DNA from: Macrostomum hystrix
Lineage: Eukaryota; Animalia; Platyhelminthes
NCBI GenBank assembly: GCA_950097015.1
Contig: CATNEN010000031.1
Span: forward strand, 2,232,001-2,296,000
Direction: 5' to 3'
Length of the DNA: 64,000 nucleotides
The stretch's first letter is position 1; every line of letters begins with the position of its first letter. A model generated the notes under the pieces. It was given only the letters and a program-made list of their open reading frames with translations, did no database searches and was not told where the DNA came from. Shown one piece after another: positions 7,901 to 32,666 of this stretch. The position numbers were made by a program, and so were the translations under genes.

Positions 7901-9622
7901 TGTGAAGGTGTGTGAATGTGTGTGAAGGTGTGTGAAGGTGTGTGAAGGTGTGTGAAGGTGTGTGGAGGTCTGTGAATGTGTGTGAAGGTGTGTGAATGTG
8001 TGTGAATGTGTGTGAAGGTGTGTGAAGGTGTGTGAAGGTGTGTGGAGGTGTGTGAAGGTGTGTTGAGGTCTGTGAAGGTGTGTGAAGGTGTGTGAAGGTG
8101 TGTGAATGTGTGTGAAGGTGTGTGAATGTGTGTGAAGGTGTGTGAAGGTGTGTGAAGGTGTGTGAAGGTGTGTGGAGGTCTGTGAATGTGTGTGAAGGTG
8201 TGTGAAGGTGTGTGAATGTGTGTGAAGGTGTGTGAAGGTGTGTGGAGGTCTGTGAAGGTGTGTGAAGGTGTGTGAAGGTGTGTGAAGGTGTGCGGAGGTG
8301 TGTGAAGGTGTGTGAAGGTGTGTGAAGGTGTGTGAAGGTGTGTGAAGGTGTGTGAAGGTGTGTGGAGGTGTGTGAAGGTGTGTGGAGGTCTGTGAAGGTG
8401 TGTGAAGGTGTGTGAAGGTGTGTGAATGTGTGTGAAGGTGTGTGAAGGTGTGTGAAGGTGTGTGAAGGTGTGTGGAGGTCTGTGAATGTGTGTGAAGGTG
8501 TGTAAAGGTGTATGAAGGTCTGTGAAGGTGTGTGAATGTGTGTGAATGTGTGTGAAGGTGTGTGAAGGTGTGTGAATGTGTGCGGAGGTGTGTGAAGGTC
8601 TGTGAAGGTGTGTGAAGGTGTGTGAAGGTGTGTGAATGTGTGCGGAGGTGTGTGAAGGTGTGTGAAGGTGTGTGAAGGTGTGTGGAGGTGTGTGAAGGTG
8701 TGTGGAGGTCTGTGAAGGTGTGTGAAGGTGTGTGAAGGTGTGTGAATGTGTGTGAAGGTGTGTGAAGGTGTGTGAAGGTGTGTGAAGGTGTGTGAAGGTG
8801 TGTGAAGGTGTGTGAAGGTGTGGGAAGGTGTGTGGAGGTCTGTGAATGTGTGTGAAGGTGTGTGAAGGTGTGTGAATGTGTGTGAAGGTGTGTGAAGGTG
8901 TGTGAAGGTGTGTGAAGGTGTGTGGAGGTCTGTGAATGTGTGTGAAGGTGTGTGAAGGTGTGTGAATGTGTGTGAAGGTGTGTGAAGGTGTGTGAAGGTG
9001 TGTGGAGGTGTGTGAAGGTGTGTTGAGGTCTGTGAAGGTGTGTGAAGGTGTGTGAAGGTGTGTGAAGGTGTGTGAAGGTGTGTGAAGGTGTGTGGAGGTC
9101 TGTGAAGGTGTGTGAAGGTGTGTTAAGCTCACCGGATCAGCACCACAAAGGTGTCACAGGCGGTGATGGCGAAGAGTACATAATCTTTGCCCTTAATTTG
9201 GCGCCAGTTGCGCAGCAGCACAATGGACACCAGCGCGCAGCCGCTGAGGCAGAAGGCCACTACAACGGGGCTGAAGTAGAGGCTCATCGCTTGATTCACT
9301 CTGTCTAGCATTCTCGCCGCCTCGTGCATCGCCTTCCAGGGACCGCCTGATGTGTGAATTAGGTCTGGGATCAATTATCACTTCTCTACCTGTCACTCAC
9401 AGCCTCTACCTGTCACTCCTTGCCTCTACCTGTCACTCCTTGCCTCTACCTGTCACTCCCAGCCTCTACATGTCACTCCTTGCCTCTACCTGTCACCTAC
9501 AGCCTCTACCTGTCACTCCCAGCCTCTACCTATCACTCCTTGCCTCTACCTGTCACTCCCAGCCTCTACCTGTCACTCCCAGCCTCTACCTGTCACTCAC
9601 CTGTCTGCGTCTCGTTAGTCAT
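4975..9622 (-). CDS. Rhodopsin-class (class A) 7TM GPCR-1, ~343 aa; exons 9622-9601, 9346-9133, 5770-4975
   Basis: Spliced product [39 protein letters not shown]...[10 protein letters not shown]...ACSLPRAL...GTNWLLYF has seven hydrophobic segments, a DRV motif in place of DRY and an N-terminal NET sequon. Both donors are GTGAG and the phases 1 and 2 match the acceptors. Confidence 0.88.
5822..9125. repeat. 3.3-kb 10-bp satellite (TGTGAAGGTG)n filling GPCR-1 intron 2
   Basis: Direct tandem repetition. Variant units recur 720 bp apart. Confidence 0.97.
9380..9600. repeat. 20-bp minisatellite (CAGCCTCTACCTGTCACTCC)n in GPCR-1 intron 1
   Basis: About 10 copies, starting at the splice donor. Confidence 0.9.
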
Positions 9623-19840: not shown

Positions 19841-22800
19841 CTAAAGCAGGCCCTGACGCTTCAAATCCTCGAACACCTTCTTGGTGACAACATTGCCCAT
19901 GGAGTCTTCGAATTCTTCCTCGGCGTCCGGCCGCCAGCGCTCCTGCTCCTTCTGGGTGCGCAGCCGCTGCCACAGGGCGATGGCGTCCTCGATGCTGGTG
20001 ACATTGGCGAAGTGGGCCGTGTTGGGGATGCCAAGGCAGCGCATGCCGTGCGCGTGCCGCCATTCGGCGAAGTGACGCTGAAAAGCCTTCGGCCCCCTGT
20101 AGGTGTGGTTGCCGCAGATCTCGCAGGTGTAGTACAGGTTGAGGCCGTGCAGTTTGTACAGCCAATAGGGAATGGGCTTGCCGTCCCAGCCTAATGGCAG
20201 GTTCTTAGGATTGTACGGTACATCGTCGTCGTCCTGATCGTCGTCGTCGTTGTTGTCGTTGCGCGAGTCAAAGCCGCGGCCGGCGCCGTCAATCATTTCG
20301 ATGTCTTCTTCGTCTGAGTCGTCAGCCTGATGCGGAATAATGTAATTAAAGATTAAGCAAGGAGAAACGCAGCCAGCAAGAAGACAATTCTGCTTATTTG
20401 CTGACTCCTGAGCTTACTCACACGCACACAGATACCGTACGCAGGCACACGCTCACACAGGTGTGTACATCTGCCTGTATTTTCTCATCGTCAGGCAGTG
20501 CACACTCTCACTGTGCCTTGGAGGTCGGCACTCAAGGGCGTAAATTGCACGGCCAACCCCCCAAAACCTTCACTCAGCGGCTGCGCCCAAAATGAATGTG
20601 GCCTCGCCGCAGAATCGAGCTCAGGGACCTTGGTGCGAGAGGCACTCTCGTACTCTTAGACCGCTCTGCCACTCACACCCGCAATTGTAACTACACCTTC
20701 GAAGATGTTAACTTCTATAAAATAAACCACCGCATTTTCTAAACCAAGGGTTGGAATTATTAATTAACTCAGAGATAAGATAGAGCAATACACTCTAATG
20801 AGTAAGGAGAGAGACGACACGACATTAGACAGGGGAGAGATGAGACATGGGTAGAGAGAAGAGACACGGGAGAGATGAGACAGAGGAGAGAGTTGAGACA
20901 GTGGAGAGATGAGATATGGGTAGAGATGAGACAAGGGTACTGAGATGAGACCGCAGATGAGACACGGTAAGAGATGAGACGGCAGGTATGAGACATGGTT
21001 AGAGAGATGGGTCAGGAACGTTAAGGTGTTAAACGGTTAGAGGCTTGCAGCCCTGATCCAAAGCTGATTTAATAAAAACACAGAAGATCCTATTTCCAGG
21101 AGTCTATCTCTCTAAACACCTAGATCCTAGCAATAACTAAAAAATGCAAGCTGTTTGAGACGAAGCCAACCTTGTAATCCGCGCGCGCCTGTTTGCGCAC
21201 CGCTCGCTCTCTCGTGGCGGCCCGCTCCTCGCTGAGCAGTTCGCACAGGCGATAGACCCGAGCTTCGATGCTGGCCACATCGCGCTGGGCCTCAGTCCGC
21301 TGCTGCTGATGCCCGGTAACCGGGGCCGCAGAACTGGGCCGCTTAGCGAACAGGCCAGGCTCCAGGTCGGCCAGCCGGCGACCCTTCGTAGACCAGAGCC
21401 GGCGGGCCCGCTCCTCCAGGCTGCCGCCGCACTTCAGGCCCAGAGCGGTCAGCGCCGACTTCAGCCGGTCCAGGCCTAGCGAGGCCAGCTCCTCCCAGCG
21501 GGAGAAGGCGGCCAGATCCAGGTGGGCGCCCGTGTGAGCCATGGCCGAGGCGGCCTCTTTGGCCCAGCCGGGAAATTCGCCGGCCGGCCATTGCCGTTCG
21601 AAAGCGGCGTCGGCCGATGAGAATTCGGCATCCAAGTCGATCATGGGCCTGGCGCGCCGGCAGAAATCGGTTAAGTAGGCCAGCAGCTGCTGGACGTACT
21701 GGCGATAAGCGGCTGATGATTTGCGCTCGCGTGACAGGTCAAACAGGCGATCAAAGATAGCCAGGTAAGTGGCGTAGTCGATGCGATCGATGCCTTTCAA
21801 ATTGAGATAGCGATCGTGGCACAGGTGCAAGTCCAGGTAGCGGCCGTAGGCTTCTTCGTCGGAGAATTCCACAATCTGGGCGCCGGCCTCCTCTGGATTT
21901 TCGCGCATGCTGACGAAGCGCTCAAACTCAACTGACAGGGGGGCAGCGATTTCATCTGGCCTTCGGCGGTGATGCTCGCGGATCGCCTGCAGAGAGTATA
22001 ATTCACTGATAAACTACTCATGTCAGTAGTATTTCTGAGCTTATGCGGGAACTCAAACTCAAACTCACACGTGCCCTAGCAGTCGCAACGCTCAGACAGC
22101 TGGCTTAAAAATACCTGACAGCCAGCCCTACAAACTGAACATTAAGACAGCCAGCCCTACAAACTGAACATTAAGACAGCCAGCCCTACAAACTGAACAT
22201 TAAGACAGCCAGCCCTACAAACTGAACATTAAGACAGCCAGCCCTACAAACTGAACATTAAGACAGCCAGCCCTAGCCCTACAAACTGAACATTAAGACA
22301 GCCAGCCATACAAACTGAACATTAAGACAGCCCGCCACAGTGCTCATGGGAAGTCAAAATGGCACAAAAAATTGCCCAAGAAAATGATTTTGTAAACCAT
22401 ATACCAGAGCACCTCGTATACCCAGAACAGGTTTTTTTTAATCGTAAGTGCTTGTCCTAGCGTACAACAGACTTTTTATTTTGTTCGGCCAAAACAGGCT
22501 CTTAATTGCGACGTTGCTATGGGAAAAAACTTATTAAAATTGAATTAGTAAAAGCTTATGCATAGTAGTCTGTTTTAACAGCGTATTTTTTCAGAAAAAA
22601 ATTGTCACTTATAACCTTAAAACATAAATGTGAGCTACACATGAAAGCCATTGTAAGCAACAACAGCTCGGAGCAGTTCGTTTGGGAAAGTGCTGTGCTG
22701 CATGGGCACAGCATATCGCTGCCATGTTAGAGCGAAATCCCGGTGCACGCTCTCGAAGGCTTGCTCGCTAAACGTGCCTAGTGGTCTCCCAGTGACGGCG

Positions 22801-25800
22801 CAGAATGTTCCCACGTGGTGCAACAGCACATGCACTTTTGGGGAAATTGGCAAACCGAGCAGCTCGTATGTGGCCTTGAACTGCGCGATTCGGTCCTGGA
22901 AATCCGCGTGCAGTTCGGAGCCAAAGCAGCTGCTGACTACTGCATCAAAGCTCACCAGACAGGAGCCGTAGTGCTTCAGTTGCCGCGGCAGGCAATTCTG
23001 AAGCTCGGCATATCGTCGAAGCAGAGTGCGACACGCGTTTCCCTCCATGCTGCCGCCGCGGTATCCTACACGCACAATGCTACGATCATGCGCCCACTGA
23101 TAAGCGCAGTTGTCACCCCACGCCGTGTTCAAAGCATCGAAAATGCGATTTGTGATGCCAAGCATCAGGTGCAGCTCTGGTGGAGGCAGAATGAAGAGAA
23201 TTTCTGCGTCATCATCTGCCTGAAGCAGAGGAGCCTCGACGCAGTTGAAGAAATCCTTTGCAGTGTTTCGCACCTTGCCACTGCTGGCGAAATCCAGCGC
23301 CAGCTGCCGAATTCTGCCGATTGTCCGCACTGGACCGCAAGTGTCTAGCGGAACTGGAGTCTCGCAGTAGCAGCATGGATGCCTGGACGCATGCGATTGC
23401 AGTCCACAGATGAGATTGGCAACTTTCATATCGGCGGCTACTGCATTCACTGTGATGCCTCCAAGGCTCAAGAGCTGGAAGAGTGCCTTTATATTGTCGT
23501 AAGACTCGGCCATGTCGGGCACAGCAGCAAGCAGCAGCAGCTTCTTGACTCCAGAATCGGCAAAAAATTTGTGCTTGGTCGACTGATTTGGTTCGCTCTC
23601 ACTTCGAGGTAGTAAGCTGACACAGATCTTGAAGAACTCGCCACCTCCGTCAAGTCCAAGCTTCACATCGATATTGTCGTGACCTCTTTCAAAAGCAACC
23701 TTTTCGATTAAGCCTTGAACATCATTGCAAACGACAGCAATTTTTGAACCTTCGCTATCCACTTTCAGTAGACTGTGCACAAAAAAATCTTCCAGATGCC
23801 GACTTCTTACTGCGAGACTCGCTCCCAAGTTCGATTGTACAGCCTTTACTGTGCCGGCTCCCATCCGCAAGATGCTAGCCGCTCGTAGAGTTTGCCTGTT
23901 GCTCAGATTGAGTGCGACTTTCAGTTGAAGCATCGTGGCTGTGGTCGCTTGAGCCAATTGTCCTGAGCTGCTGGCTGCTTCCACACAGTGACCCACAGTG
24001 ACAGCCAGAGGCCTGCCTCCATGTGGTCTTTTCAAAGTCACTGTGCTAGATCCGGCTGCTTGCAGCTTGGCAGCGATTGCGGTGCTGGCCACTTGCTCTG
24101 TCGTTCCAGGGCTCAGCTGGGTGCTCAAGTTAATCAGCCGCGTCGCCTTGTTGCAGCGATGAGTCTTTCCTTTACCAATGGGCGAGTGGCAGCCAGAACA
24201 CAGCCGTTCAGGAGTCTGAGGTGCATCGCCGCAAGATGATGGTCGGCCCCTCGTACAGTTTGGCGAACTAGTTGCATAGATACTGCATGGATCTGAGTTT
24301 TTGTGCAGGTTGCTGCGAGCAATCCTGCAGATCTCACATGGGCAGTCGGGCTGTGATCTTCTGCTGACTGGGATGCTGCTCAAGTCTTATAGCATTTGCT
24401 CGTAGAGAAGTCTTGGCGGCAAAGGACGAGGCGATGGGCCAGCTAGCGAAGACACGATTCGGCGACAGCCCTCACACACTCCAGCAGGAAGAAAATGCTG
24501 CACAGATGAGAAGTTTGGCAGGATGTAGTGCTCAATCGCTGCTGCATCGTTTACACAGCGCTCAGCCTTGCGTAGGCAAAGCAGGCACACACTACGAAGG
24601 CACTCATCGTGGCTCTTTGGGCTGTTGGGCATTTTTCTGAATTCGAATAGAACGTTTGAGCTATGCATAGATGCAAGGAACAATTTATGTCACAGGACAG
24701 ACAATATCAGACTTTATTTTCAAGTGAGGTGACTAGCCGCATATGTACAGTGCTTTCTACAACTTTGTACACTGCCATATCACATCTGTGATGCATTACA
24801 CAAAAGTCATGATACAATCTCAGCAGTCAATATTTATTGTACTTTTTCCTGCCGTCCCTAATCAAAACTAAATACTCTGTGCGTTGCAGGATCAGCATCT
24901 ATCTAATGCTGATATCTATTCTTGTTTTCAGCTTGTGCGCAGTGAGGCTCCAGTGCCAATTTTAATGATTGCATCGGAGCCAGTTTTGATAACGAACTGA
25001 TAAGAACTCACAGGGAGGCTACCCAGAGGGTAGCGAAGGCAGCTAGTCCTTCCTATATACTAAAATTCAAAACTATATTTCTATCTATATCATTGTACAA
25101 AGCCAGAACTTTGAGAATTCATTTTATAAGGCTGATTTCTGCACCCACTAACCAACAGTCGGAATAGCCGATGTGTAGGCACTAGGAATAGGTTAGGCTA
25201 GGCGAGGCGAAGTGTCCCTGGTTCGACTCTGCACTGCGTCAAATCATTTAAACTAATAGTCAGCCAGTAGTGATCAAAGATTATTTTAATTTTCTTTTCA
25301 ATTCGTAAATAAAATATCATTTTATTTGATATTCAAACCAGAGTTTGAATTCAAAACTATATTTCTATCTATATATATATACGAAAAATTGATTTTCTCC
25401 CGAACGGCTCAACCGATTTTCACCATTTCTTCACCAAAAGATGCCAAATATGGGGACAATTATACACGTATTTTTATTAAGCTTAACTTTATTGCTAAGG
25501 GGATTAAATATTCGAAAAACATGATTTTTCAAAGGTCAAACCATCTTGGCCTATTGAGAATTTCACTGACAGCCACTGAGTTAGAATTGCATCGTCGAAT
25601 TGCGCAACAACCCCTAGCTGATTGAATTTGAAGCCTGCACTCTGGAGACAAATTAGAAATAAATGTACACAACCAACCGCGAGACTGAGTGTACTCTATT
25701 TTCTTACTTCATTGTACAAAGCCAGAACTTTGAAAATTCATTTTATAAGGCAGATTTTTGCACCCACTAACCAACAGTCGGAATAGCCGATGTGTAGGCA

Positions 25801-28800
25801 CCAGGAATAAGTTAGGCTAGGCTAGGGTTCGATTCTGCACTGCGTCAAATCATTTAGACTAATTTTCAGCCAGTAGTGATTGAAGATTATTTTAATTTAT
25901 TTTTTTCATTTCGTAAATAAAAAATCATAAATCATAGCAAATCTGAGTTTGAATCATGGCTAAACCAGATTTTGAATCATGGCTAAATCAGAGTTTGAAT
26001 CATGGCAAAGCCAGAGTTTGAATCATGGCTAACCCAGAGTTTGAATCATGGCTAAACCAGAGTTTGAATCATGGTAAAGCCAGAGTTTGAATCATAGCTA
26101 ACTAGAGTTTGAATCAAGGCTAAACCAGAGTTTGAATCATGGCTAAACCAGAGTCTGAATCATGGCTAAACCAGGGTTTGAATCATAGCTAAACCAGAGT
26201 CTGAATCATGGCTAACCCAGAGTTTGAATCATGGCTAAACCAGAGTTTGAATCATGGTAAAGCCAGAGTTTGAATCATAGCTAACTAGAGTTTGAATCAA
26301 GGCTAAACCAGAGTTTGAATCATGGCTAAACCAGAGTCTGAATCATGGCTAAACCAGGGTTTGAATGAAGGCAAAAAAATTTTTTTGTCATTGTATCGAA
26401 TTCTCTAACTTTTGATTTTGTTATCTTATAACATCATAATGATATTCAATTAATTCATTTATTTGTTGTTCTCAATTTTCTACAAAAGCAGCTAATATAA
26501 ATATTCAACTGGCAAAAATTGTCAACTGAGGATCATTATCAATAGGGAGTAATCATCAAATGAGGGATCATGGTCAACTGGGGGATCATCATCAATGGGG
26601 ATTGTCATCAAATCTGGGATCATGGTCAACTGGGGGATCATCATCAATGGGGATTGTCATCAAATCTGGGATCATTGTCAACTGGGGGATCATTGTCAAC
26701 GGGGGGAACATTGTCAACTGGGGATCATCATCAATGGGGATTATCATCAAATCGGGGATCATGGTCAAATGGGGGATCATCATCAACTGGGGGATCATTG
26801 TCAACGGGGGGAACATTGTCAACTGGGGATCATCATCAATGGGGATTGTCATCAAATCTGGGATCATTGTCAACTGGGGGATCATTGTCAACGGGGGGAA
26901 CATTGTCAACTGGGGGATCATTGTCAACTGGGGATCATCATCAATGGGGATTATCATCAAATAGGGGATCATGGTCAACTGGGGGATCATGGTCAACTGG
27001 GGGATCATGGTCAACTGGGGGATCATTGTCAACTGGGGATCATTGTCATCTGGGGATCATTTTCAACTGGGGATCATTGTCAACGGGGGGAACATTGTCA
27101 ACTGGTGATCATCATCAATGGGGATTATCATCAAATAGGGAATCATGGTCAACTGGGGGATCATGGTCAACTGGGGGATCATGGTCAACTGGGGGATCAT
27201 TGTCATCTGGGGGATCATTTTCAACTGGGGGATCATTGTCTACTGGGGATCATGGTCAACTGGGGATCATTGTCAACTGGGGGATCATTGTTAACTGGGG
27301 GATCATTGTCAACTGGGGTATCATTGCCAACTGGGGGATCAATCTCATCTGGGGGATCAATGTCATCTGGGGGATCATTGTAGCTTTAAAAAGCTGTAAA
27401 TTCAGCTGCTTAAAAGTATATACTAGACGAATTAAAATTATTTCTGCTCCCCGAAGGGGGGCAAAACTTGCTAGTATATATACGAAAAATTGATTTTCTC
27501 CCGAACGGCTCAACCGATTTTCACCATTTCTTCACCAAAAGATGCCAAATATGGGGACAATTATACACGTATTTTTATTAAGCTTAACTTTATTGCTAAG
27601 GGGATTAAATATTCGAAAAACATGATTTTTCAAAGGTCAAACCATCTTGGCCTATTGAGAATTTCACTGACAGCCACTGAGTTAGAATTGCATCGTCGAA
27701 TTGCGCAACAACCCCTAGCTGATTGAATTTGAAGCCTGCACTCTGGAGACAAATTAGAAATAAATGTACACAACCAACCGCGAGACTGAGTGTACTCTAT
27801 TTTCTTACTTCATTGTACAAAGCCAGAACTTTGAAAATTCATTTTATAAGGCAGATTTTTGCACCCACTAACCAACAGTCGGAATAGCCGATGTGTAGGC
27901 ACCAGGAATAAGTTAGGCTAGGCTAGGGTTCGATTCTGCACTGCGTCAAATCATTTAGACTAATTTTCAGCCAGTAGTGATTGAAGATTATTTTAATTTA
28001 TTTTTTTCATTTCGTAAATAAAAAATCATAAATCATAGCAAATCTGAGTTTGAATCATGGCTAAACCAGATTTTGAATCATGGCTAAATCAGAGTTTGAA
28101 TCATGGCAAAGCCAGAGTTTGAATCATGGCTAACCCAGAGTTTGAATCATGGCTAAACCAGAGTTTGAATCATGGTAAAGCCAGAGTTTGAATCATAGCT
28201 AACTAGAGTTTGAATCAAGGCTAAACCAGAGTTTGAATCATGGCTAAACCAGAGTCTGAATCATGGCTAAACCAGGGTTTGAATCATAGCTAAACCAGAG
28301 TCTGAATCATGGCTAACCCAGAGTTTGAATCATGGCTAAACCAGAGTTTGAATCATGGTAAAGCCAGAGTTTGAATCATAGCTAACTAGAGTTTGAATCA
28401 AGGCTAAACCAGAGTTTGAATCATGGCTAAACCAGAGTCTGAATCATGGCTAAACCAGGGTTTGAATGAAGGCAAAAAATTTTTTTTGTCATTGTATCGA
28501 ATTCTCTAACTTTTGATTTTGTTATCTTATAACATCATAATGATATTCAATTAATTCATTTATTTGTTGTTCTCAATTTTCTACAAAAGCAGCTAATATA
28601 AATATTCAACTGGCAAAAATTGTCAACTGAGGATCATTATCAATAGGGAGTAATCATCAAATGAGGGATCATGGTCAACTGGGGGATCATCATCAATGGG
28701 GATTGTCATCAAATCTGGGATCATGGTCAACTGGGGGATCATCATCAATGGGGATTGTCATCAAATCTGGGATCATTGTCAACTGGGGGATCATTGTCAA

Positions 28801-31800
28801 CGGGGGGAACATTGTCAACTGGGGATCATCATCAATGGGGATTATCATCAAATCGGGGATCATGGTCAAATGGGGGATCATCATCAACTGGGGGATCATT
28901 GTCAACGGGGGGAACATTGTCAACTGGGGATCATCATCAATGGGGATTGTCATCAAATCTGGGATCATTGTCAACTGGGGGATCATTGTCAACGGGGGGA
29001 ACATTGTCAACTGGGGGATCATTGTCAACTGGGGATCATCATCAATGGGGATTATCATCAAATAGGGGATCATGGTCAACTGGGGGATCATGGTCAACTG
29101 GGGGATCATGGTCAACTGGGGGATCATTGTCAACTGGGGATCATTGTCATCTGGGGATCATTTTCAACTGGGGATCATTGTCAACGGGGGGAACATTGTC
29201 AACTGGTGATCATCATCAATGGGGATTATCATCAAATAGGGAATCATGGTCAACTGGGGGATCATGGTCAACTGGGGGATCATGGTCAACTGGGGGATCA
29301 TTGTCATCTGGGGGATCATTTTCAACTGGGGGATCATTGTCTACTGGGGATCATGGTCAACTGGGGATCATTGTCAACTGGGGGATCATTGTTAACTGGG
29401 GGATCATTGTCAACTGGGGTATCATTGCCAACTGGGGGATCAATCTCATCTGGGGGATCAATGTCATCTGGGGGATCATTGTAGCTTTAAAAAGCTGTAA
29501 ATTCAGCTGCTTAAAAGTATATACTAGACGAATTAAAATTATTTCTGCTCCCCGAAGGGGGGCAAAACTTGCTAAGTATATATACGAAAAATTGATTTTC
29601 TCCCGAACGGCTCAACCGATTTTCACCATTTCTTCACCAAAAGATGCCAAATATGGGGACAATTATACACGTATTTTTATTAAGCTTAACTTTATTGCTA
29701 AGGGGATTAAATATTCGAAAAACATGATTTTTCAAAGGTCAAACCATCTTGGCCTATTGAGAATTTCACTGACAGCCACTGAGTTAGAATTGCATCGTCG
29801 AATTGCGCAACAACCCCTAGCTGATTGAATTTGAAGCCTGCACTCTGGAGACAAATTAGAAATAAATGTACACAACCAACCGCGAGACTGAGTGTACTCT
29901 ATTTTCTTACTTCATTGTACAAAGCCAGAACTTTGAAAATTCATTTTATAAGGCAGATTTTTGCACCCACTAACCAACAGTCGGAATAGCCGATGTGTAG
30001 GCACCAGGAATAAGTTAGGCTAGGCTAGGGTTCGATTCTGCACTGCGTCAAATCATTTAGACTAATTTTCAGCCAGTAGTGATTGAAGATTATTTTAATT
30101 TATTTTTTTCATTTCGTAAATAAAAAATCATAAATCATAGCAAATCTGAGTTTGAATCATGGCTAAACCAGATTTTGAATCATGGCTAAATCAGAGTTTG
30201 AATCATGGCAAAGCCAGAGTTTGAATCATGGCTAACCCAGAGTTTGAATTCATGGCTAAACCAGAGTTTGAATCATGGTAAAGCCAGAGTTTGAATCATA
30301 GCTAACTAGAGTTTGAATCAAGGCTAAACCAGAGTTTGAATCATGGCTAAACCAGAGTCTGAATCATGGCTAAACCAGGGTTTGAATCATAGCTAAACCA
30401 GAGTCTGAATCATGGCTAACCCAGAGTTTGAATCATGGCTAAACCAGAGTTTGAATCATGGTAAAGCCAGAGTTTGAATCATAGCTAACTAGAGTTTGAA
30501 TCAAGGCTAAACCAGAGTTTGAATCATGGCTAAACCAGAGTCTGAATCATGGCTAAACCAGGGTTTGAATGAAGGCAAAAAATTTTTTTTGTCATTGTAT
30601 CGAATTCTCTAACTTTTGATTTTGTTATCTTATAACATCATAATGATATTCAATTAATTCATTTATTTGTTGTTCTCAATTTTCTACAAAAGCAGCTAAT
30701 ATAAATATTCAACTGGCAAAAATTGTCAACTGAGGATCATTATCAATAGGGAGTAATCATCAAATGAGGGATCATGGTCAACTGGGGGATCATCATCAAT
30801 GGGGATTGTCATCAAATCTGGGATCATGGTCAACTGGGGGATCATCATCAATGGGGATTGTCATCAAATCTGGGATCATTGTCAACTGGGGGATCATTGT
30901 CAACGGGGGGAACATTGTCAACTGGGGATCATCATCAATGGGGATTATCATCAAATCGGGGATCATGGTCAAATGGGGGATCATCATCAACTGGGGGATC
31001 ATTGTCAACGGGGGGAACATTGTCAACTGGGGATCATCATCAATGGGGATTGTCATCAAATCTGGGATCATTGTCAACTGGGGGATCATTGTCAACGGGG
31101 GGAACATTGTCAACTGGGGGATCATTGTCAACTGGGGATCATCATCAATGGGGATTATCATCAAATAGGGGATCATGGTCAACTGGGGGATCATGGTCAA
31201 CTGGGGGATCATGGTCAACTGGGGGATCATTGTCAACTGGGGATCATTGTCATCTGGGGATCATTTTCAACTGGGGATCATTGTCAACGGGGGGAACATT
31301 GTCAACTGGTGATCATCATCAATGGGGATTATCATCAAATAGGGAATCATGGTCAACTGGGGGATCATGGTCAACTGGGGGATCATGGTCAACTGGGGGA
31401 TCATTGTCATCTGGGGGATCATTTTCAACTGGGGGATCATTGTCTACTGGGGATCATGGTCAACTGGGGATCATTGTCAACTGGGGGATCATTGTTAACT
31501 GGGGGATCATTGTCAACTGGGGTATCATTGCCAACTGGGGGATCAATCTCATCTGGGGGATCAATGTCATCTGGGGGATCATTGTAGCTTTAAAAAGCTG
31601 TAAATTCAGCTGCTTAAAAGTATATACTAGACGAATTAAAATTATTTCTGCTCCCCGAAGGGGGGCAAAACTTGCTAGTAAAATACTAAAAAGATGGGAA
31701 TGCTTCATTTTTCGTTGCAACTTCACAATAAAGGACCTGTTTAAGCTGAATAAAATAAAAAGTCTGTTGTACGCTAGGACAAGCACTTACGATTTAAAAA

Positions 31801-32666
31801 AAACCTGTTCTGGGTATACGAGGTGCTCTGGTATATGGTTTACAAAATCAGTTTCTTGGGCAATTTTTTGTGTCATTTTGACTTCCCATGAGCACTGTGC
31901 CGCCCTACAAATTGAACATTAAGACAGCCAGCCCTACAAACTGAACATTAAGACAGCCAGCCCTACAAACTGAACATTAAGACAGCCAGCCCTACAAACT
32001 GAACATTAAGACAGCCAGCCCTACAAACTGAACATTAAGACAGCCAGCCCTAAAAACTGAACATTAAGACAGCCAGCCCTAAAAACTGAACATTAAAACA
32101 GCCAGCCCTACAAACTGAACATTAAGACAGCCAGCCCTACAAACTGAGCATTAAAACAGCCAGCACTACAAACTGAACATTAAGACAGCCAGCCCTACAA
32201 ACTGAACATTAAGACAGCCAGCACTACAAACTGAAACTTGAGTCTTTAAATTGACAGCTAGCACTACAATCTCACCTTTCAGACACACGCTATCCCAACA
32301 ATTGATCATGCTTTAGAAAGTGGTGCAACAACAGGGGATAACATGACTGCTGCTCTAAAAATGTTCTGCGATGCATGAATGAACAGTGTGACATTGTACC
32401 TGAAGTCTGTCATTGAGTTCGGCAAACTCATTAGGCCCACTTAGAGCTTGAATATCGGCTTTCCTCAGTCCGTCCTTGTCCTCGTAGAGCTCCTTCAGCT
32501 GCCTGCTGACTTCCCGGTGCCTGTCTAGCATGGCCCTAAGTCTGTGATCGCTGTTTACCCGTTCCCTGTGGGTTCGCGGCTGGAATTTCTTCTCCCGGCA
32601 GATTTCGTTGAGTAAGCGCTCTCGCTCCTCATGCAAACGGCGTTGCAACTCTAGCACTGTCTCCAT
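19841..32666 (-). CDS. SF3A3: Splicing factor 3A subunit 3 (SF3a60/Prp9), ~522 aa; exons 32666-32400, 21986-21171, 20326-19841
   Basis: [18 protein letters not shown]...NSDHRLRAM...SGPNEF; [16 protein letters not shown]; [23 protein letters not shown]; [25 protein letters not shown]...CEICGN...[10 protein letters not shown]. Both introns are phase-0 GT-AG. Confidence 0.97.
20365..20682 (-). mobile_element. SINE family A copy in SF3A3 intron 2 (3' end degenerate)
   Basis: Reverse-complement match to the 18506-18877 head and body. Confidence 0.85.
20780..21010. repeat. Degenerate GAGATGAGAC-type minisatellite in SF3A3 intron 2
   Basis: Same motif family as 2670-3390. Confidence 0.7.
22118..22335. 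repeat. 29-bp minisatellite (ACAGCCAGCCCTACAAACTGAACATTAAG)n, left part (split by the transposon)
   Basis: About 7 copies; the array resumes in register at 31900. Confidence 0.95.
22635..24632 (-). pseudogene. Chapaev transposase (~665 codons) with one in-frame TAA at 24389-24387
   Basis: N-terminal H-x7-C-x2-C...C-x2-C...C-x-C-x2-C zinc finger. Catalytic D-x72-D-x~221-E (LGLDGGG, AADMK, FSEQAFE), plus CCYC and HVLLHH zinc ligands and [10 protein letters not shown] and EGNACR motifs. The two track ORFs share one frame, separated by TAA-GAC. Confidence 0.88.
24898..25046 (+). mobile_element. Short Helitron-like piece: 3' hairpin plus CTAG terminus (5' end uncertain)
   Basis: Hairpin GCTACCC-AGA-GGGTAGC (25018-25034), then 8 nt, then CTAG|T at 25043-25047. 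Confidence 0.55.
25368..31678 (+). mobile_element. Head-to-tail trimer of a ~2.1-kb non-autonomous Helitron (25368-27474, 27475-29576, 29577-31678) with internal 23-bp and 18-19-bp minisatellites
   Basis: 5' end A|TCTATATATATATACG...AACGGCTCAACCGATTTT; 3' hairpin GCTCCCC-GAA-GGGGGGC, 8 nt, then CTAG|T. Three near-identical units with a period of 2101-2102 bp and no Rep/helicase ORF. Confidence 0.85.
31900..32237. repeat. 29-bp minisatellite, right part
   Basis: About 11 copies of the same unit as 22118-22335. Confidence 0.95.

Follow-up and report, generated by a model that had tools for sequence, protein, structure and literature searches.

A transposon of the flatworm Macrostomum hystrix whose two ends read like a V(D)J recombination signal sequence (RSS) raises two questions: to which group of RAG1-related elements it belongs, and whether the likeness of its ends to the RSS is more than chance. 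The element occupies positions 22336-31899 of the window, by which we mean the whole 64,000-nt stretch of DNA analyzed here (contig CATNEN010000031.1, positions 2,232,001 to 2,296,000, forward strand). This feature is genuine, and the observation that drew attention to it is confirmed. Taken as a whole, it is probably best explained as a Chapaev-type DNA transposon that moves by cut and paste, is present in few copies and was active recently, with a RAG1-like core and bipartite ends, residing in a flatworm host.

The first-pass annotation had described both termini as a CACAGTG heptamer, a 21-nt spacer and an A-rich box, with a 7/7 match to the RSS heptamer and a 7/9 match to the RSS nonamer, and the raw sequence agrees with this at both ends and at spacer 21. 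Specifically, each terminus reads CACAGTG, the spacer and ACAAAAAAT, and from heptamer to A-box the two ends of the window copy differ only by a G/A exchange at spacer position 27. Two pairs of repeat-finder arms, an outer one (22333-22441 and 31794-31902; 109 nt, 97% complementary) and an inner one (22432-22526 and 31708-31802; 95 nt, 85% complementary), combine into terminal inverted repeats (TIRs) of ~200 bp that bound 22336-31899. The transposon splits a 29-bp satellite array (22117-22336 and 31902-32235; unit GACAGCCAGCCCTACAAACTGAACATTAA), and once the element and one CCGC are excised in silico, the satellite period returns with one substitution. This empty-site proxy lends good support to the target site duplication (TSD) of 4 bp that had been claimed, a CCGC being present on both flanks. 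The features of the window copy are as follows.

22332..22335, no strand: left TSD, CCGC, matching 31900-31903 (satellite period test)
22336..22526, plus strand: left TIR, ~190-200 bp (repeat finder arms, two pairs)
22336..22342, plus strand: left heptamer, CACAGTG, 7/7 to the RSS heptamer and 6/7 to Transib CACAATG
22364..22372, plus strand: left A-rich box, ACAAAAAAT, 7/9 to the RSS nonamer at spacer 21
22635..24683, minus strand: transposase open reading frame (ORF), 682 codons long where intact, split in the window copy by a TAA at 24387-24389
24899..31678, no strand: nested insert outside the canonical element, three ~2.1-kb tandem units of a dispersed repeat
31708..31899, minus strand: right TIR (repeat finder arms)
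31863..31871, minus strand: right A-rich box, ACAAAAAAT (raw sequence, copy comparison)
31893..31899, minus strand: right heptamer, CACAGTG (raw sequence, copy comparison)
31900..31903, no strand: right TSD, CCGC, pairing with the left CCGC

With respect to extent, the boundaries given by the first-pass annotation stand, whereas the distance between them is not the length of the element. In the assembly from which the window comes (42 contigs, 220 Mb), three copies have a canonical length of 2774-2781 bp, equivalent to positions 1-2563 plus 9344-9564 of the window element. Because these copies equal the window element minus 24899-31678, that stretch is an insert, and the apparent 9.56-kb length of the window copy includes 6.8 kb of nested repeat. 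The canonical 2.77-kb element carries a single intronless transposase gene between its ~200-bp TIRs; it leaves no space for another gene, and therefore contains no RAG2-like ORF.

The transposase and its place among RAG1-like enzymes

The transposase had been treated as one in need of repair, which is true of the window copy, and there only on account of one in-frame TAA (24387-24389). This stop is private: the other four full-length copies have AAA (Lys) at the site, the difference amounting to a TA/AT swap. An uninterrupted frame of 682 codons is found in the copy on contig C33 (L012:801-2849:-), and this natural sequence was used throughout, unedited. The protein gave no significant match in Pfam, PHROGs, a PDB sequence search or a PDB family-profile search. 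A word search returned 27 homologs of 444-735 amino acids, none with a Pfam domain, the best being from Macrostomum lignano (48% identity) and Hydra being among the rest. In a 16-member family alignment the invariant residues include a DDE triad (D345, D418 and E640), a C(2)C pair (C437-x2-C440), an LH motif (L504-H505) and an H(4)H pair (H618-x4-H623). The 19-residue spacing of D418 and C437 equals that of D708 and C727 in RAG1. Single members of the family also showed weak matches to DUF1280 and zf-AD, which we regard as leads only.

The RAG1-like layout that had earlier been recognized from motifs is now matched at the level of predicted fold. An AlphaFold model built from the family alignment (mean pLDDT 79, core mostly >85) retrieved RAG1, BbRAGL or HzTransib in the top rows of a Foldseek search (E 5e-11 to 1e-5), the next family being the P element at 1e-2. 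In VIA-align, model residues 243-682 superimposed on mouse RAG1 459-996 with a Z of 24.6 and a root-mean-square deviation of 3.6 Å over 407 residues, as compared with Z values of 22.2 (HzTransib), 21.3 (BbRAGL), 13.6 (P element) and 8.7 (Hermes). The match extends beyond the RNase H fold alone and spans the entire RAG1 core downstream of the nonamer-binding domain (NBD). On this model, the fold predicted for the C-terminal 440 residues is that of the complete RAG1/Transib core, comprising the dimerization and DNA-binding domain (DDBD), pre-RNase H, RNase H, ZnC2, ZnH2 and the C-terminal domain (CTD). As a further lead only, the nearest entries in the ESM Atlas are unnamed cnidarian and poriferan clusters, followed by RAG1 clusters at 0.86-0.87.

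Chapaev and Chapaev3, within the CMC group, were reportedly described by Kapitonov and Jurka in 2007. The published hallmarks of Chapaev are a TSD of 3-4 bp, invariable CAC/GTG termini and a transposase of the DDE kind that bears the motifs C(2)C, LH and H(4)H (Zhang et al. 2014, PMC4079192). The flatworm family has each of these, in keeping with its first assignment as Chapaev-type: its TSDs include CCGC (by the satellite proxy), TCCC and ATCG/ATCA, with CACC in the relative L039; all 11 ends in the genome have the CAC...GTG termini, as do relatives with CACAGTT and CACACTG; and the four motifs are invariant across the 16 family members. Moreover, comparison by eye with Garfield_BM, a published Chapaev3 protein (PMC4079192 supplement), points to a common string, D-x-K-x6-GLQ-x6-PC-x2-C, together with PPLH, KVHxLxxH and SE(E)Q..H.D. 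A single ORF of ~550-700 amino acids, a cysteine-rich N-terminus and animal hosts that include cnidarians are likewise shared with Chapaev and Chapaev3. The element departs from Chapaev3 in its TIRs of ~200 bp, its GC-rich 4-bp targets and an A-box ~22 bp inward, whereas the published Chapaev3 ends are short (11-19 bp), with CACTATG or CACTGTG, an A-rich stretch right after the heptamer and TWA duplications.

Some authors place Chapaev and Chapaev3 themselves within the Transib superfamily, each as a clade of it, and describe an N-terminal 'Chapa' zinc finger common to Chapaev and RAG1 (Kapitonov and Koonin 2015, PMC4411706). An alternative is that the family belongs with Transib as a divergent member or forms a new sister clade, which we consider improbable. 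Transib (HzTransib, 6PQN and 6PQX) shares with the element the predicted whole-core fold, a CxxC plus Hx4H zinc site, a heptamer with a 20-23 bp spacer and an A-rich nonamer, mostly symmetric ends and a preference for GC-rich targets. The whole-core match to both RAG1 and HzTransib, an end architecture equal to the Transib consensus (PMC1131882) and a 2026 preprint reporting Transib relatives with 2-3 bp TSDs would all suit a Transib assignment. The 4-bp TSD, in place of the 5 bp of Transib, and the LH motif and D-x-K-x6-GLQ-x6-PC-x2-C string held in common with the Chapaev3 protein argue for the Chapaev type, as does the cysteine-rich N-terminal domain, given that canonical Transib lacks one (PMC4411706). 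Transib TIRs, at ~38 bp, also differ from those of the flatworm element. The resemblance to Transib and RAG1 is detected in fold and not, by HMM, in sequence: the Pfam RAG1 model (PF12940) finds nothing in the transposase, a further point against Transib, and has no match across the whole genome.

In terms of the other RAG1-like systems, the element shares with RAG1 and the 23-RSS the DDBD-to-CTD fold (Z 24.6, RAG1 459-996), the 7/7 heptamer and the 7/9 nonamer, and differs from them in the undetected NBD-like fold, the absence of a RAG2 partner, the 21-nt spacer without 12/23 asymmetry, a TSD of 4 bp (5 bp for RAG1) and the fact that it is mobile. ProtoRAG (BbRAGL, 6B40) resembles it in core fold (Z 21.3), a CAC-type heptamer and an A-rich internal TIR region. 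The RAG2L gene, asymmetric TIRs and 5-bp TSD of ProtoRAG are all absent from the flatworm element, in which the 2.77 kb hold one ORF and the extra 6.8 kb of the window copy is repeat DNA; the first-pass annotation was thus right that symmetric ends and the lack of a RAG2-like ORF set it apart from ProtoRAG. Taken together, these comparisons point to a new Chapaev-type family within a known group, whose RSS-like end is genuine and fits the published Transib pattern.

Copies, nested insert and mobility

The assembly contains 11 ends of the family, every one of which starts with CACAGTG, and these belong to six copies. Divergence among the copies is 0.27-0.59%, and the duplicated targets are 4 bp long and mostly GC-rich. 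Two copies, L014 (C25:1201808-1204581) and L015 (C7:10490408-10493181), lack the same 10 bp of the ORF and carry the same C-to-A exchange in the A-box, and they lie at different loci with different TSDs; a frameshifted, box-altered copy was therefore mobilized in trans once both changes had arisen. A domesticated or decaying relic that no longer moves would account for the small number of copies (six), for an ORF that is broken in four of the five full-length copies, the sixth copy being truncated, and for the absence of a TSD from the sole intact copy. It is nonetheless a very improbable explanation in view of copies at most 0.6% apart that have perfect termini throughout and occupy different loci with different TSDs, and of the two deletion-bearing copies at different sites. 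Recent activity of a Chapaev-type element is the reading that we retain.

L012 (C33:1641121-1645271), in which alone the 682-codon ORF is intact, has perfect ends and no TSD, its flanks being GCTT and CACA; copy-copy recombination or a deletion in the flank may account for this. It carries a different insert, of 1.35 kb, at the same point as that of the window copy. The 24899-31678 insert itself consists of three tandem ~2.1-kb units with 18-bp and 23-bp minisatellites, each unit holding ~49 copies of the former and ~19 of the latter. Genome-wide, its sequence yielded 649 candidates at first look, those that were scored being mostly 93-98% identical. Hundreds of sites in the genome carry the part outside the minisatellites, mostly at 93-98% identity, which makes it an abundant, young dispersed repeat. 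A T-arm-like string within the nested repeat was rejected as a tRNA.

Further relatives in the genome comprise an older one (L063, C12:2766502-2768685; 71-80% amino acid identity), which is stop-ridden and partly inverted or rearranged, and a distant transposase relative (L062, C5:5195559-5197164; 31-42% amino acid identity); TIRs were not detectable in either. No derivatives resembling miniature inverted-repeat transposable elements were found in the genome at up to 3 mismatches to the first 26 nt. A solitary CACAGTGCTAATGG...CAAAACACAAAAAAT with a 23-nt spacer (L079, C9:1472111-1472149) resembles a family end; it is single-copy, no partner end was found within the 3-kb locus, and we discounted it as either a chance match or what is left of a related element.

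The RSS-like ends within and beyond the family

To what extent the ends resemble an RSS by accident was gauged by shuffling positions 4-60 at the repeat's own base composition with CAC held fixed. The exact heptamer arose with a probability of 0.004, a nonamer scoring 7/9 or better, whatever the spacer between 10 and 25, with a probability of 0.06, and the two jointly with a probability of ~4e-4. In its best RSS-nonamer register the spacer is 21 nt at both ends alike, which is not the 12/23 arrangement of the RSS, and no nonamer better than 5/9 lies at a canonical distance (12 or 23, ±1). Outside the family, the bare pattern has 7 matches in the genome versus 5 in a control, which is the frequency expected by chance.

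Comparison with Transib places the ends more closely. The A-run lies at element positions 31-36 and supplies an A at both 34 and 35, as in Transib and the RSS; read one base inward, at spacer 22, the box becomes CAAAAAATT and matches the Transib nonamer AAAAAAATC at 7/9. The Transib end consensus is CACAATG, a 22-23 bp spacer and AAAAAAATC, and positions 1-3, 34 and 35 are invariant in 21 Transib families, shared with the RSS and essential there (Kapitonov and Jurka 2005, PMC1131882). The flatworm end agrees with this consensus at 6/7 of the heptamer, at 7/9 of the nonamer in the spacer-22 register and at each of the five key positions. Most Transib ends, moreover, have symmetric spacers of 20-22 bp (PMC8355894), which the symmetric spacer of the flatworm element resembles.

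As a symmetric heptamer, 20-23 bp spacer and A-rich nonamer are the Transib norm in print, this architecture is known for the wider group. Chapaev3 ends are already published as CACTATG or CACTGTG (PMC4079192), so a near-RSS heptamer is not unusual for the group either. The first-pass annotation, which had singled out the full heptamer with a nonamer-like box as the notable part, overstated its novelty in this respect.

Conservation of the ends beyond the flatworm copies was read from 25 metagenome loci, few of which have readable ends; scans of genome-contig and viral-contig collections with the family alignment found no relatives. The one locus with both ends is L039 (43% amino acid identity), which has a CACAGTT tip and a CACC TSD, and whose A-runs at 32-37 and 29-36 compare with 31-36 in the flatworm element despite a different spacer sequence. 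A single readable end in L047 (29% identity) begins with CACACTG. Ends are partial or decayed in L047, L037, L038 and L056, and the remaining metagenome loci other than L039 have none. An inner A/T-rich box thus recurs within the family, and its position is only partly fixed.

These data bear on the leading alternative, which is that the likeness to the RSS past CAC is a coincidence and that the A-box has neither a specific role nor a fixed position. The TIR, which is A-rich and contains several AAAAT-type tracts, could supply a nonamer-like box, with AGTG falling at heptamer positions 4-7 by accident in one family. The 6% of shuffles in which some spacer between 10 and 25 brings up a nonamer of 7/9 or better, the mere 5/9 at canonical 12/23 spacers and the 7-versus-5 count of the bare pattern speak for such an account. 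So do the variant heptamers of relatives (CACAGTT and CACACTG), the missing A-run of L038 and the selection of this finding from a scan of very many windows. The joint chance of ~4e-4 is less easily accommodated, as are the agreement at all five RSS-essential, Transib-invariant positions in an enzyme of the same fold and the A-run of L039, which at 43% protein identity stays within 1-2 nt of its place. Coincidence is accordingly a possibility to be taken seriously, albeit an unlikely one. The bipartite layout of heptamer, ~22-bp spacer and A-box, being the same as in Transib, more likely reflects shared ancestry or binding geometry than chance.

Recognition of the ends

With regard to mechanism, the core would engage the terminal CACAGTG and, in the manner of RAG1 and Transib, cleave at the border of CAC, presumably nicking the DNA first and then leaving the flank as a hairpin. 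A second contact would be the A-rich box ~22 bp inward, recognized by the N-terminal region of the protein, and the most plausible reader would be a conserved AT-hook-like RGRP together with the adjacent CxxC...HxC finger. The N-terminus, a candidate Chapa-type zinc finger in the first-pass annotation, is cysteine-rich and conserved, with CxxC pairs at 33/36 and 70/73, a CxCxxC at 114-119 and the CxxC..HxC finger at 162-177. The RGRP motif (residues 148-151 of L012:804-2849:-) is located in a disordered linker upstream of this finger; GRP is present in ~9/16 members, some of which have a canonical RGRPK. A second, semi-conserved GG(R/K)P occurs at 222-225, immediately upstream of the part aligned with the RAG1 DDBD. 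In RAG1, GGRPR stands upstream of the core at the start of the NBD and enters the minor groove of the nonamer, and the parallel with RGRP is suggestive only.

The structural alignment of the transposase begins at RAG1 residue 450-461. Residues 1-250 of the transposase were also modelled alone (pLDDT 77). This model matched no solved fold (Foldseek E >1), its best VIA Z being 2.9 to a ZAD domain. It also matched no NBD chain, a missing match that is itself weak evidence against an NBD-like fold.

Several points weigh against the overall reading given above. As no solved fold matches residues 1-250, the proposed A-box reader is a conjecture, and the hairpin chemistry is suggested by relatives only. 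The Chapaev placement is by TSD, termini and motifs, the resemblance to Garfield_BM being a visual comparison of motifs, and both PF12940 and the PDB-sequence profile search miss the transposase. One copy has an apparent 6-bp duplication, CGCGGC, and another, that on C33, has none. Both ends are readable in only one relative (L039) of the 25 metagenome loci. The A-box is not uniformly conserved among relatives: L047 has TTTT at 33-36 and AAAA at 38-41, L038 keeps the common AAGTCAAAATG followed by no A-run, and L056 and L037 keep the common CAAAA..TTGCCCA displaced by ~8 or more bp inward. Conservation of the A-box position in family TIRs, which the first-pass annotation had offered as a check, is only partial: it holds for L039, and these four loci shift, replace or lack the A-run.

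The RSS and its two-part recognition through heptamer and nonamer are usually traced back only to Transib and RAG-like transposons. The flatworm element belongs to a more distant Chapaev branch and combines a predicted full RAG1-type core with the five end positions common to the RSS and Transib. It refines the existing picture, since the group, its link to RAG1 and the RSS-like ends of the wider superfamily are already published. We put forward, as a speculation that we hold rather doubtful, that bipartite end recognition is older than the split of Chapaev and Transib. In the ancestral system, a RAG1-like core would have recognized the CAC-heptamer, and an AT-hook situated immediately upstream of that core would have contacted, by way of the minor groove, an A-tract about two helical turns inward. 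This family would then represent an NBD-less version, based on an AT-hook and zinc finger, of what later became recognition of the nonamer by the NBD. The element is very young and recently moved and has one naturally intact gene, which makes biochemical tests of the heptamer, spacer and A-box feasible. If early bipartite recognition is true, that intact copy would offer a tractable system for the origin of the nonamer and the spacer rule.

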